64,000 bases of DNA from the sequence record OR532817.1. The stretch is one strand, 5' to 3'. Of this stretch, positions 16,218 through 33,020 are shown piece by piece. The notes under the pieces were generated by a model that saw only the letters and a list, made by a program, of their open reading frames with translations, was not told the origin of the DNA and did not search any database. Numbering within the stretch: position 1 is the first letter of the stretch; each line of letters starts with the position of its first letter. The translations under genes and the position numbers were made by a program.

Positions 16218-16528
16218 GGCCCCTTAGCTCACGCTTTGGTTAGAGCAGACGACTCATCGATAAATGGTGACTTTCACAAGTAATTGTGATTGAAAAACTG
16301 GATGAATTCAGGGAAACCTTAACACATAATGGTGATGGCAATCCTGAGCCAAGCCCAATAAGCGTATTGGGAAGGTGCAGAGACTAGGTGGTTCAGCACG
16401 ATCTTGCTGTGTAATACACCAATAGCGTCCGGCATCCTTATAGGATGATGATATAGTCCTTTCTATAATGAAAATTATAGGTAAAAAGAATCGTTTGGTA
16501 CTGTGTTCGACTCACAGAGGGGCCACCA
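16218..16528 (+). tRNA. tRNA-Ile2(CAU), intron-containing (exons 16218..16257 and 16489..16528)
   Basis: Joined exons give GGCCCCTTAGCTC...GACGA-CTCATAA-TCGTT...AGGGGCCACCA, closely resembling E. coli ileX. Confidence 0.9.
16258..16488 (+). mobile_element. group I intron (IC3-like), 231 nt, no ORF
   Basis: Core AATTCAGGGAAAC, AATCCTGAGCCAA, GTGCAGAGACT, GATATAGTCC; 5' exon ends in U, intron ends in G; GUGA can pair with exon UCAU giving the U.G splice-site wobble. Confidence 0.92.
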
Positions 16529-28612: not shown

Positions 28613-31241
28613 TTGAAGAAATCAAATCGGAGTACTGAAATGAACACTATTATTTTTTTGATTATACTGAGTACTGGAACAACTACTACGGTAATTAAAG
28701 AAATGCCTTCTTTGGTACAATGTAAAGTAATTATGAATTCCGTTTATACACAACAAAAAGAAAAGCAAAAAGAAACAAGTAAAACGGATTACTATTGTTT
28801 GAATTCAACAACCAACACTAAGTACTATCCAGATGAGTGAGTTCACATTTCTTTGTACTTTTTATTATTATACTTCTGCTACTTCAAAGAAGTATGTAAA
28901 AGAAGAAATAAACGTATATACCAGTTCAGTACAAAAAGCTATTTGCGAGATACATTTGTACTTAGTTTGTTGTGAAGTAATTGATATAGAATACATACCG
29001 TACAGGAATAAATCTAATGACTTTAAGACTAATTACTGAAGTAGATAAATCAGTAAGTGAATTATCAACTGAAGAATTGAATAAGTTGGACTGGAGTTCA
29101 GTCCCAAAATCACAACTTCTTTCTATTTCAGATGATCGTTTGATGAAATGTCCCATCGACATTTTAACCCAAAGTTATTCTTGTGATAACTATAGCAATG
29201 ATTTGTGTTTATATATACTCACTTCTAAAATAAAGAAGTGCAAAGATTTTCGAAATGGTTATGCATTATATCATCTATTAAGTAATTTTTTTAATCCAGA
29301 TTTTATCAAGAATAATAAAAAAGAAATTCTTGAAATGTTAAAACGACATGAAGAGATTCATAGTACTGTTACGTTTCCATCAGTTATTCAATACTTGATG
29401 AAACATGGAATCATTTCATTTTTTGATTTAAATATGACATTTGAAACAATCAATGACACATGGGATGCCTTGGAATCCGATATTCCACAAGAAGATTGGA
29501 TTAAATTAATCACACGTACAAATTACCTGTACTCAACACTCACTGAACACCATTCAATACAGAATAATGTAATACCATTAAGTACTGAAAACTTATGGAA
29601 ATGTGGGATTAAAATTAATCCAGTTGTTGATCTGTCGTGGGTTAAAAATGGCACATATGAATGTGATGATGATTATGTAGACATTTTACTGGAAGATTTA
29701 ATAGAACAATTAAATTGTACTTCAATCACATGGGATGAAGTGCTAGAAAAATTCAATACATATAAACTTGATAGGGACAACAATCCCCCTTATGGTGTTA
29801 ATTTTATCAGTACTGTATGGGAACATCACATAATTGACACAAAGTTTGAATTGAACAGAGATGATTTTTTCAAGAAAAATTTACATCTTTACAAAACTAT
29901 TGGATAAAAAGTCTTGACATGGAGTACTATTTGAGTAATAATACTCCTATCTTAATTTAATGAGGAAACACTGATGAAAACTCTATTACTTATTGTAGTC
30001 GTGGCTTTTGGTGCATGGTGGTTTTCTGAAAATTTCAGTATAACTTCAAAAAATGAACCACAACCTGTTCCACAAGAAGTACATACAGATTCTATTGGAA
30101 CTAAGGTTGATAAAATAATTAAAGTAATCACGGAATAAATGTTATGGGATTAGATGTAACTGAAGCTCAAAGAATATTAGAAAACCTCAGAGAAATTAAT
30201 TCAAAATTTGAACGTAATAATCTCTGTACTGAATGGGATAAAAAACTACCCAATAGATTTAGTGAAATCACTAATGAAATTTTATTCAGTACTGGTTTAG
30301 TTTGGATTGAACATACTTCTCTGTATAATGTTACATATCGCCATGAAGGTTATGTTGTTGAATACAATGAATATCTAGATCAGGGTATGAAAGTACTCAA
30401 AATGTGGAGTACTGTTTATAACGAGCTAGTAATTATCTGGATTAATGACAGTAATGGTGTTGACTTTGGTGATTTAGAAGAAAGCACTACTAAGGTAGCA
30501 CCGATTTTCGTTGGTTTGTCTGATAATATCATGTAAGTATTAAAAGAAAGGTTTTGACAATGAATGAAAAATTGGCTTTAATTTGGAAAAGTGGTTATGA
30601 CTTTAAAGTAACACCAAAGGAACTTAGAGTATTTCGTACTGAATACTGTGAGTATCTTGATTTAGACCAGTATAATACCATTGTTCGTATTGAACACAAT
30701 GGTGATGTTGAAGGTCATATCAGTGAAGTACTTGATAAAGCTATTTCAATTATTGGGGTAAAATGATGATTAGTTTTTATTTGGCAGTGATACTTATTAA
30801 TGGTAATATCGAACGAACACTAGGAAATGGGTTTTATAAAACCCCTGAAGAATGCTATACGGCGACAAATTGGCCTCGTGATAGTGAAACTCGTGAAGAA
30901 TTCAAATGCATCAAAGCTACTGGTGATTTTGTAAATTTCAAAGTGATTGAGGTAAAAAAATGATTCTTTCAAAAGAAGAACGTGATATTGTACTACACGC
31001 TTTATATTTTCTTGAGAATGAAAGTATGCATACGGATGCTTCTATGGCGTTGATTGAACGTCTTCAGAAAGAAGAAATGCCAAAGATTTATCGTATCCGT
31101 TATCTTGATGGGGCTGGTGGTGATCGTATTGCCATTGCTGAATCACGAGAAGAAGCAGAACAAATCTTCACTGATAATTATTTGAATCCTTTTTTGATGG
31201 AAGAAGTTTGTGAAGTGAAAAATGGTACATTTATTGGTTGA
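28613..31241 (+). other. hypothetical CDS run (28631..28840, 28833..29039, 29017..29907, 29974..30138, 30144..30536, 30554..30766, 30763..30963, 30960..31241)
   Basis: Coupled ORFs; 29974..30138 is a small membrane protein missing from the track. Confidence 0.55.
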
Positions 31242-31274
31242 CAGATAATAAAAATACGGTATAATGTTTATATC

Positions 31275-31337
31275 AAGACAAGAATGGTTCTATGTGTATC
31301 TGTGAATAAGCGGCAGTTCGATTCCCCTTCTTGTCTT
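31275..31337 (+). ncRNA. candidate promoter-proximal hairpin sRNA
   Basis: After TTGACA..TATAAT; AAGACAAGAA/TTCTTGTCTT; contains GTTCGATTCC; T-run follows. Confidence 0.45.
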
Positions 31338-31687
31338 GTCCTTTTTTAATTTAACAAAGTAACTATGTTTACTCCACATAATCAATCAGTTGTTATTGAG
31401 GTGCAGAAATGATTCTTTCTAATGAAGAACGTAAAATTGTTTTGCAAGCAATGAGTCTTGTGCATTTAACTACTGAACAAGAGAGAGATTTGTTTGCTCG
31501 TCTTAAAGTCGGCAATGATTTAATTGAACGCAAAAAAGCCAGTGCTGCTCGCCATAGTCGTTTCAAAGAGCATATGCATACATTATATGGTCCTCTGTCA
31601 CATTTACATAATCATGAATATTATGATTTTTGTAAAAAGAATGAATTTTGAGTGATAGTACCGAATCATTGAGATAGAATCTGTATC

Positions 31688-31768
31688 AAGACGGTAGCTC
31701 AAGGGAGAGCAGCAGGCAATAACGATAAGTTCACCTGTCAGCGTGGATTAAAACACCACCCGTCGTCA
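31688..31768 (+). ncRNA. tRNA-like RNA with 17-nt anticodon loop
   Basis: GACGG/CCGTC, D arm GCTC-AAGGGA-GAGC, GCAGG/CCTGT, GTGG/CCAC T-like arm. Confidence 0.55.
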
Positions 31769-32241
31769 TTTAATTTAATGAGGTATATTATGTTTACTCC
31801 AAACACATCAAATGTAGGTAAGCGTGTAGTACTGTTAGAAGATGTATCAACACTTCGTGGGACTTTCAGTAAAGGTCACGAGATGACCATCATCGGAGAA
31901 ACGTCACGTGGTTGGGATCTCGAAGATGATGATGGTAATCGCATTTTAGAAGCTGGGATGTTTGGTCATAAAGAATTTAAACTACTTGACTAAATTATTC
32001 AGTACTGAAGTATAATTTTGTTGTCTTAACGTGAGGAAATAAAATATGATTAAAGCTGGTGTATTTGCACTCGGTGTTATGGTTGGTGGTTTTGCTCATA
32101 TGCTTTATGTTGATCATAAAGCACCTGAACCTGCACCATTTGTTGAAGTACAAAAGTGATCTGTCGGTAAATAAAAATTAAATCATCAAGGTAATATACA
32201 TAGTGATTGACAAATAATAGCAGTGCTGCTAATATAAGAAC

Positions 32242-32309
32242 AAGACGGGGTGATAAATTAACATTAACCTTAATCGATCAACAGGTGGCTGCGGTTATCA
32301 TCCCGTCTT
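32242..32309 (+). ncRNA. candidate promoter-proximal hairpin sRNA
   Basis: AAGACGGGGTGATAA/TTATCATCCCGTCTT, then CCTTTTT. Confidence 0.45.
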
Positions 32310-32528
32310 TCCTTTTTAACAATGAGGTTTATCATGAGTAAAGATGTTCACGTTCCAGTACAAAATGGTATGTCAGCATGTGGTAAACGCGTGGATTTAA
32401 CTGGTTGGGTACGTTCAATGATCACTTGCAAAAAATGCAAAAAATCTCAAGAATATCTTGAACTACCTAAGTAAGTGAAGTATAATGTTTAACAAGTGGT
32501 GAGCTTTAGTGATACATCTATTGACGAT

Positions 32529-32618
32529 GCGGGTGTGAGGGTGGCTACCTCAGCAGTGGTGAATTATGTAGCAACTGTGCTGAAAGATGCTAAGACAGTT
32601 CGATTCTGTCCACCCGCC
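32529..32618 (+). ncRNA. tRNA-like RNA with 16-nt anticodon loop
   Basis: GCGGGTG/CACCCGC acceptor, TGAGG/CCTCA D-like arm, GCAGT/ACTGT, T arm GACAG-TTCGATT-CTGTC. Confidence 0.6.
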
Positions 32619-33020
32619 GCACTAAAGGTAGGGTACTAAGTACCAGAAACTAACACGAGGCAGTCGGAATATACGCCTACACCACAATTACTTTTAATTT
32701 AATTGAGGAACAAAACATGTCAAAATCACTTGTAAATAAAAACTCTCAAGGATTTGTAATTATTGATCTGAATCTTAACAGCGGGAGAATGTTCCAAAGT
32801 ACTGATGCATGTATGCAATTTGACTTCCTCGGTTATGAAATTAGTGTTAGTACTGGTAGCTCGGTACTACAAGGCGGTTTGCTTCAGGAAATTATGGTTA
32901 CTGATCCAGAAGAACGTCCTCACTTCATTCAGGGTTCGGTGCAGGATGCTATTATGTTTGTTATTCAGCGTGAACAAAATAGAAACTTTAATGAATTTAC
33001 CAATGCAATGAGTACTAAGA

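Follow-up and report, generated by a model that had tools for sequence, protein, structure and literature searches.

Two families of conserved, tRNA-derived RNA genes in a satellite cluster of a Klebsiella jumbo phage

The window analyzed here, a stretch of 64,000 nucleotides (nt) from sequence record OR532817.1, belongs to a Klebsiella jumbo phage of the RaK2/K64-1 type (Alcyoneusvirus, ~350 kb). Its main tRNA island, as delimited by ARAGORN and Rfam, spans 13.5 to 16.7 kb and holds six tRNAs and a group I intron; a satellite RNA cluster, in which RNA genes are interleaved with small open reading frames (ORFs), lies 15 kb away. In this cluster a first-pass annotation had flagged two tRNA-shaped RNAs, starting at 31688 and 32529, in which a loop of 16 to 17 nt replaces the 7-nt anticodon loop. 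Judged by comparison with their relatives, both flagged elements are conserved RNA genes that are unable to decode, and they belong to two different families: an 80-nt RNA (family R2) and a 192-nt RNA (family R1) of which the second flagged element is only a part (Table 1). The sequence around them (31400-32900) is 100% identical to Klebsiella phage RCIP0023 and 98 to 99% identical to K64-1, Muenster, and KP13-7, while RaK2 matches at 95% over 60% of the length.

Neither element is recognized as a tRNA. ARAGORN and Rfam (release 15, scanned at gathering and permissive thresholds) made no call in the flagged region, a permissive Rfam scan of 31300-33000 was likewise empty, and the Rfam tRNA model found neither element at E ≤ 10.

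Table 1. Positions of the RNA elements, their parts, and associated signals in the window
Feature	Position	Strand	Description
E1	31275-31337		D-armless copy of RaK2 pseudo-tRNA gt007
Weak sigma-70-like promoter	31652-31680	+	GTGATA, 17-nt spacer, TAGAAT; 9/12 matches; ends 7 nt ahead of the 80-nt RNA
80-nt RNA (family R2)	31688-31767	+	tRNA-derived cloverleaf; first flagged element
End motif UUUAAUUUAA	31769-31778	+	directly 3' of the 80-nt RNA
E3	32242-32309		15-bp hairpin
Promoter-like site	32458-32486	+	TTGAAC, 17-nt spacer, TATAAT; 10/12 matches; ends 9 nt ahead of the 192-nt RNA
192-nt RNA (family R1)	32495-32686	+	contains the second flagged element
Terminal helix (7 bp)	32495-32501 with 32680-32686		
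Helix P0 (8 bp)	32504-32511 with 32620-32627		
Small hairpin	about 32515-32528		
tRNA-like arm	32529-32618	+	acceptor stem and T arm conserved; D arm and 16-nt-loop stem lineage-specific
Hairpin 1	32632-32644		
Invariant strand	32645-32658		
Hairpin 2	32659-32677		
End motif UUUAAUUUAA	32693-32702	+	6 nt 3' of the 192-nt RNA

The 80-nt RNA had been described as a cloverleaf with a GCTC/GAGC D arm and a 17-nt loop, and this description was borne out by the minimum-energy fold of the single sequence (z = -2.1) and by the consensus fold of five homologues. The fold consists of a 7-bp acceptor stem with one A.G mismatch, the GCUC/GAGC D arm, a 5-bp stem carrying the 17-nt loop, and a T-like stem of 4 bp with a noncanonical loop; in the consensus, compensatory changes occur in 10 of the 20 pairs. 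The 80-nt core is 91 to 92% identical (blastn) in Salmonella phages Munch, 7t3, SE_PL, and PHA46 and in Klebsiella phage fENko-Kae01, and in the three of these that were inspected (Munch, 7t3, and fENko-Kae01) it lies ~70 nt upstream of a tRNA-Leu gene. The copies of the Munch group have unrelated flanks and a fully exchanged acceptor stem (GUUGAG/CUCAAC versus GACGG/CCGUC). The RaK2 element gt006 sits at the same place between 95%-identical flanks and is itself far more diverged, keeping the four arms and a loop of 19 nt; loop length in the family is thus 17 to 19 nt.

Membership in R2 was defined by a cloverleaf, the conserved GUAGCUYAA...AGAGCAGC D-arm region, and a loop of 17 to 19 nt, all of which the window element has. 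The R2 model finds one copy per genome (89.9 bits in RCIP0023, 102 in Munch, and 70.7 in RaK2) and nothing significant in Yersinia phage fHe-Yen9-04 (Yen9-04) or Pectobacterium phage CBB; these matches follow by construction, because the model was built from those sequences, and the independent evidence is the covariation in the consensus fold. An exact-pattern scan of viral contigs found no further relatives. The D arm (GUAGCUCAA..GAGAGCA) shows tRNA ancestry, and the T loop is without the tRNA consensus. A link between the T-like loop, ATTAAAAC, and that of a 50-nt element had been proposed, but the motif occurs 12 times against 11.1 expected, which is chance level. From these comparisons we regard the 80-nt RNA as an autonomous cloverleaf with an oversized loop, whose structure is under selection.

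The second flagged element is not separate: it is nested in the 192-nt RNA, which has its conserved core elsewhere than in the tRNA-like shape. Anchored on this core, the members of R1 share one plan. At the 5' end, a 7-nt strand that pairs with the last 7 nt is followed by AG and by the 8-nt strand of helix P0; at the 3' end, the P0 partner stands just before G(U/G)AGC and is followed by hairpin 1, an invariant strand, hairpin 2 (GGCG...CGCC), and UA. The invariant strand is 14 nt long and reads AG(C/A)AA(C/A)UAACACGA. Between its two strands, P0 encloses a variable domain of 57 to 185 nt, and the members measure 135 to 269 nt. We found that 7 or 8 of the 8 P0 positions pair in 32 of 35 distinct sequences, through many different sequences, and that hairpin 1 is built from 22 different stems, in most cases with GNRA loops. 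In an alignment of 25 sequences, 97.2% of cells pair compared to 73.8% in shuffles, and the covariation score is 0.578 compared to 0.123; none of 500 shuffles reached 0.578, and slid controls stayed at or below 0.083. Twelve pairs have changed on both sides, and the covarying helices are strictly nested. The minimum-energy fold of the single 192-nt sequence reproduces this comparative model.

Searched against the window, the R1 model matches its full length with all pairs present (111.1 bits, E 4e-29) and has no second copy anywhere in the window. RCIP0023, Yen9-04, and CBB each gave a single match to it, and neither Munch nor T4 gave any. Scores range from 76 to 138 bits over all full members and from 76 to 112 bits in those beyond the window, RCIP0023, Yen9-04, and CBB. 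No family in Rfam 15 matches the 192-nt RNA, and R1 is apparently undescribed, a judgment made against that release and without comparison to the existing catalogue of 10,006 anonymous candidate phage RNAs (PMC10690425). What had been taken for a separate hairpin ending in ACCA belongs to the same RNA. As a tRNA-like 3' end the ACCA was rejected, being the 3' strand of the covarying terminal helix (CACCAC with GUGGUG) and not conserved; elsewhere in the family this strand reads CACUUAU or CUCGUUU.

The first-pass annotation had credited the element at 32529 with intact acceptor, D, and T arms. The 7-bp acceptor stem and the T arm are real and covary, but the D arm and the stem of the 16-nt loop, although they can be drawn here, are not conserved. 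Within the insert, conservation with covariation is confined to the small hairpin beside the acceptor, the acceptor stem, and the T arm (GUUCGAUUC), and the highest conservation among the 192-nt matches falls on the T arm plus the 65 nt that follow, rather than on the tRNA shape. The D and anticodon parts vary among relatives in length, sequence, and even order: the loops of five relatives measure 6, 10, 10, 15, and 16 nt, the smallest members have only one extra hairpin, and in one member (L027, 4615-4787) the insert is circularly permuted, running T arm, acceptor-like hairpin, D arm. A loop that ranges from 6 to 16 nt and is free to vary in sequence is therefore unconstrained, not designed, and the impression that two RNAs carry "the same alteration" gives way to two loops from unrelated families, the second without constraint. 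On RF00005, whose gathering score is 29, relatives of the arm reach 23 to 31 bits. Two further helices enclose the acceptor stem, which has no free CCA end. On this evidence, 32529-32618 is not a free-standing tRNA mimic and is best described as the variable arm of 32495-32686.

The reverse complements of the two long loops match nothing else in the 64-kb window with up to 3 mismatches, and the suggestion that the loops act as guides is therefore without support. The long loop of the 80-nt RNA (31712-31724, GGCAAUAACGA) and its RaK2 version (GCAAACACAG) resemble, apart from gaps of 2 to 3 nt, the invariant strand of the 192-nt RNA (AGCAA(A/C)UAACACGA); this likeness could reflect a common binding motif or chance.

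Protein-coding frames have been called across the 192-nt RNA. A frame of 47 amino acids (aa) lies across it in the window (32496-32639), coding-sequence calls for hypothetical proteins overlie it in Muenster (L002:2316-2414) and phi1_175008 (L008:500-607), and a hypothetical protein is likewise recorded at the matching place in K64-1 (RefSeq) and KP13-7. Because the stems covary and the sequences carry insertions and deletions, these ORFs are probably false gene calls.

The 192-nt family reaches well beyond the close relatives of the window phage. With 32495-32700 as the query, blastn matched Yen9-04, CBB, Yersinia phage P778, ~145-kb Klebsiella and Citrobacter phages (Stephanstirmvirinae), and a Serratia phage of the Vequintavirinae, each time in or beside phage tRNA genes and at places without RNA annotation. 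A scan of viral contigs for a 17-nt core yielded 39 loci, 33 of them true relatives. The R1 architecture is common to >30 diverse phage and prophage sequences, whose carriers comprise lytic jumbo phages, myoviruses of 90 to 150 kb (P778, Stephanstirmvirinae, and Vequintavirinae), P22-like and other temperate phages, and GC-rich uncultivated phages. In many loci the unit ends 1 to 15 nt from the flanking tRNAs, as expected if tRNA processing releases the RNA, and in three jumbo phages it lies directly 3' of a CUA suppressor tRNA; some members occur in phages without a nearby tRNA. No constant protein neighbor of R1 was found, the contexts being terminase, portal, integrase, or HNH genes or tRNAs.

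When prokaryote genomes were searched for the exact core 17-mer, 38 of the 40 matches listed were due to chance and two were real. Both (in Bosea and Limoniibacter) are carried by prophages, where tRNAs, HNH, and terminase genes follow closely downstream, and among 151 genomes of the same bacterial order the seed genome alone carries R1. Given the prophage location and this single occurrence, R1 is therefore a phage RNA and not a host gene. Its core stays the same, letter for letter, all the way from enterobacterial jumbo phages to alphaproteobacterial prophages, and because the hosts concerned share little but their translation and transcription machinery, this invariance points to a universal target.

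Two kinds of partial element were seen alongside these members. Phage CUS-3, a P22-like coliphage, has only a degenerate R1 core (L096:2475-2559, 44.5 bits) between Q and the holin gene, in the late-operon leader, where lambdoid phages often carry tRNAs. In three uncultivated phages, elements of ~55 to 60 nt near R1 (L034:6091-6223, L041:891-950, and L044:2378-2436) match positions 8 to 63 of the tRNA model, without an acceptor stem, at 26 to 33 bits.

The syntenic elements of RaK2 have been interpreted as decayed. The RaK2 annotation has two pseudo-tRNAs at this place, and the accompanying paper names a pseudo-tRNA-His and a pseudo-tRNA-Val in a separate cluster of ~1 kb (PMC3622015), which would make the flagged elements tRNA pseudogenes with random insertions in the anticodon loop. 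The rejection of both elements by tRNA finders agrees with this interpretation, as does turnover in the region, where a D-armless copy stands at 31275-31337 and one element has been cleanly lost. Decay would, however, not keep every stem across lineages by compensatory changes, hold an 80-nt core at 91 to 92% identity between distant phage groups despite unrelated flanks, or leave an invariant core that is not part of a tRNA around the second element in >30 phages. We consider decay very improbable, and largely refuted because of the covariation; the argument of the first-pass annotation for design over decay thus holds for both RNAs, each of which persists in distant phage groups, its pairing preserved by compensatory base changes. 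Its idea of nondecoding mimics is supported as well. By its own terms, orthologs with normal 7-nt loops would have counted as a refutation, and the relatives are without such loops.

A different account would make the elements decoding tRNAs, each with a short intron in its long loop that a phage pathway of RNA ligase and kinase would splice out. Phages of the RaK2 type have genes for an RNA ligase, a polynucleotide kinase, and a CCA-adding enzyme (PMC3622015), and a true group I intron (16232-16480, 104 bits) interrupts a tRNA gene of the main island. The loops of the flagged elements, however, have no conserved U33-anticodon-purine frame, and their length varies among relatives (17 to 19 and 6 to 16 nt). 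The 80-nt RNA is without the T-loop consensus, the acceptor of the 192-nt arm is enclosed by two helices and offers no free CCA, and no CCA is encoded after the acceptor stem of either element. Splicing is in our view barely credible, and even decay and splicing taken together account for only a small share of the probability.

The cluster has a regular layout. E1, the 80-nt RNA, E3, and the 192-nt RNA each start 7 to 10 nt past a -10 box, and each is followed within 20 to 70 nt by a ribosome-binding site and a small ORF. The end motif TTTAATTTAA has 13 copies in the window, compared to 2.6 expected, and 8 of them lie just 3' of RNA elements (12777, 13476, 14570, 15749, 16162, 31345, 31769, and 32693); the first five of these belong to the tRNA island, and the other three follow E1, the 80-nt RNA, and the 192-nt RNA. 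Since the motif follows RNA genes in both places, the satellite cluster is built like the tRNA island. The motif might mark a site of processing or of RNase E action, or form part of the upstream element of the next promoter.

This layout raises the question of whether the RNAs are cis-acting 5' leaders of early mRNAs that stabilize the transcript, direct its processing, or cause antitermination (as put RNA does) for the small ORFs downstream. The spacing of all four elements between a -10 box and an ORF speaks for it, as does a 5'-terminal helix, AAGAC.../...GUCUU, common to three unrelated modules; in addition, the prophage copies of R1 head the late operon, before terminase. In other phages, however, tRNA genes and not ORFs follow both families, the 192-nt RNA of RaK2 is not at a transcript start, and a simple stabilizer would not be expected to keep an invariant core across phages of unrelated hosts. 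We therefore do not favor the leader account, which we hold to be rather unlikely though worth keeping in view.

RaK2 and Muenster have the pseudo-tRNA gt007 between the promoter and the 192-nt RNA, and a comparison of window positions 32487-32495 with L001:2275-2385 shows that gt007 is cleanly missing from the window phage, in which the 192-nt RNA therefore stands at the transcript start. In Yen9-04, CBB, and contig L026, a CUA (amber suppressor) tRNA occupies the place of gt007. E1 (63 nt) lies directly 3' of a perfect promoter (31238-31265; TTGACA, 16-nt spacer, TATAAT) and, relative to gt007, is missing the D arm (~19 nt) and keeps a 10-bp terminal helix, an 11-nt loop, and the GUUCGAUUCC T loop. 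E3, which RaK2 has in identical form, spans 68 nt as a hairpin whose 15-bp stem (AAGACGGGGUGAUAA...) carries a loop of 38 nt; it sits between a TG-extended promoter (32207-32235) and a 46-aa ORF. The leader modules at 31275, 31688, 32242, L001:1402, and L001:2289 are unrelated, yet all start with AAGAC(A/G)(A/G)G and finish with C(Y)(Y)GUCUU. The Munch-group 80-nt RNA uses another acceptor helix.

Taken together, the comparisons describe RNAs with conserved structure, present in a single copy per genome and set in tRNA arrays, whose ends coincide with tRNA processing sites and whose decoding features have been lost. The best overall explanation, to which we assign a probability of roughly 0.55, is that they are selectively maintained tRNA-derived small RNAs of the large-phage repertoire, for which a role in trans as mimics of the tRNA top half is tentatively proposed. 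Each RNA would be transcribed from a host-type promoter ending 7 to 10 nt upstream and released from the downstream sequence at the A/U-rich UUUAAUUUAA motif, or in other phages through processing of the neighboring tRNAs, and the product would be a compact RNA with closed ends. Acting in trans, such RNAs could engage tRNA-binding proteins of the host or the phage. In the 192-nt RNA, the insert would present the tRNA top half (acceptor stem and T arm), and the invariant junction could serve as a specific binding module for a highly conserved partner, in the manner of Y RNAs, which combine protein-binding and tRNA-like modules. The function as trans-acting top-half mimics, considered by itself, is a tentative suggestion and less likely than not.

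A number of observations weigh against this explanation. The region is rich in A/T, and promoter-like sites are no more frequent in it than in shuffles; because of this the promoter ahead of the 80-nt RNA is called from its position only. A cis-acting leader would also fit the position of the two RNAs in the window phage, each immediately flanked by a promoter on one side and a small ORF on the other. The 80-nt family comprises three independent lineages only. Public RNA runs consist of wastewater contigs at a depth of 2 to 7, from which neither ends nor strands can be read and whose source may be DNA; the 80-nt core of two other relatives turns up in one metatranscriptome, which shows presence only. 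Ro60/TROVE (PF05731) is absent from five R1 carrier phage genomes in which positive controls were detected. Finally, the invariant junction is no less fitting for a ribozyme or a ligand-binding RNA than for a protein site.

This last point carries an alternative of its own, in which the 192-nt family would be a ribozyme of a new kind that cleaves itself, or else a new RNA that senses a ligand, and would help to mature phage tRNA arrays, a role like that of theta ribozymes. Invariant junction strands joined to freely varying helices are typical of catalytic and ligand-binding cores, the unit abuts tRNAs on either side within 1 to 15 nt and directly follows the CUA suppressor tRNA of three jumbo phages, and there is precedent for ribozymes adjoining phage tRNAs (PMC10879173). 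Even so, the fold is a plain nested four-way junction and not an HDV-like double pseudoknot, no ribozyme or riboswitch family in Rfam matches, and some members reside in phages that have no tRNA nearby, and we judge this alternative unlikely. Other candidates were examined by eye and rejected: the core sequence of the hammerhead is absent, boxA-like words at the 3' end of some R1 members are accounted for by their pairing to the 5' end, and an 8-nt complementarity of the core to 16S rRNA is no more than chance.

Top-half mimicry in the 192-nt RNA may also be cast more broadly. It is conceivable, though doubtful at this point, that the 192-nt RNA represents a new and widespread functional class of phage RNA. 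Its invariant four-way-junction core would then be catalytic, form a pocket for a ligand, or dock onto some cell component that is conserved universally, and the RNA would display an exchangeable tRNA top-half module. If so, the RNA would give lytic jumbo phages, and temperate phages too, across many bacterial phyla a means of manipulating tRNA processing, translation, or tRNA-targeting defense.

Stable RNAs of unknown function have been known from phage tRNA clusters for 50 years, as exemplified by species 1 and 2 of T4, and the present analysis defines two more, with comparative proof of structure. The invariant core offers a clean handle for pull-down, ribozyme, and ligand tests. Annotations also need correcting, both where hypothetical proteins have been called across the 192-nt RNA in several genomes and where its neighbors in RaK2 have been called pseudogenes.

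Among known RNAs, T4 rnaC and rnaD, bacterial Y RNAs, tmRNA, and the theta ribozymes that adjoin tRNAs come nearest in behavior, but for every one of them a defining feature is missing here. As for tRNA itself, the 80-nt RNA forms a cloverleaf in its minimum-energy and consensus folds, and the 192-nt arm keeps the acceptor and T arms, with D and anticodon arms in some lineages only; neither RNA has a 7-nt anticodon loop with U33, and both fall short of the family score thresholds (ARAGORN and RF00005). Like tmRNA, R1 joins an acceptor/T-arm domain without an anticodon to a second domain, and the best tmRNA score in Rfam, a weak match from the insert of one member, is 18 bits, compared to a gathering score of 47. 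Unlike in tmRNA, the acceptor stem of R1 is internal and not formed from the RNA ends, and there is no CCA, tag reading frame, or ARAGORN call. GOLLD and ROOL are likewise phage or prophage RNAs of unknown function that adjoin tRNA genes, but they are 3 to 5 times larger and have no Rfam match here. GOLLD sometimes holds tRNAs inside it.

Theta ribozymes (HDV-like; PMC10879173) are structured RNAs that abut phage tRNA genes, often those of suppressor tRNAs. They are nested double pseudoknots of ~60 nt that cleave at their 5' end, whereas R1 members, at 135 to 269 nt, form a nested four-way junction; the gaps from R1 to upstream tRNAs are 3 to 11 nt, compared to the theta criterion of within 5 nt of a tRNA 3' end, and R1 does not pass as theta.

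The rnaC and rnaD products of T4 (species 1 and 2 RNAs) offer a parallel in setting, being small stable RNAs of 119 to 139 nt that lie in a phage tRNA cluster and are cotranscribed with tRNAs; rnaC ends in a T-arm-like hairpin, and the function of both is unknown to date. They have no sequence or model similarity to R1, no shared core, and no invariant four-way junction, and R1 finds nothing in T4; identity with them was rejected for lack of homology. The bacterial Y RNA YrlA (PMC4201824) is also modular, combining a tRNA-like domain with a protein-binding module, and occurs in phages too, and L027 shares with it the permuted order of T arm, acceptor hairpin, and D arm. YrlA, however, adjoins a Ro60 gene, and its domain is always permuted, whereas R1 is mostly in normal order, as in the window copy, with L027 the only permuted member. 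The GNCGAAN(0-1)G motif and the YrlA D/T sequences are not seen in R1, the 5' consensus of R1 is ..GAGAGC.., and there is no Rfam match. Y RNA identity was rejected because the five carrier phages checked have no Ro60 gene. Counterparts are also present in RaK2, where gt006 is a member of the 80-nt family at the same place and gt007 is the full-length form of E1; both were published as nonfunctional pseudogenes, and the comparison made here shows that their structure has been maintained.

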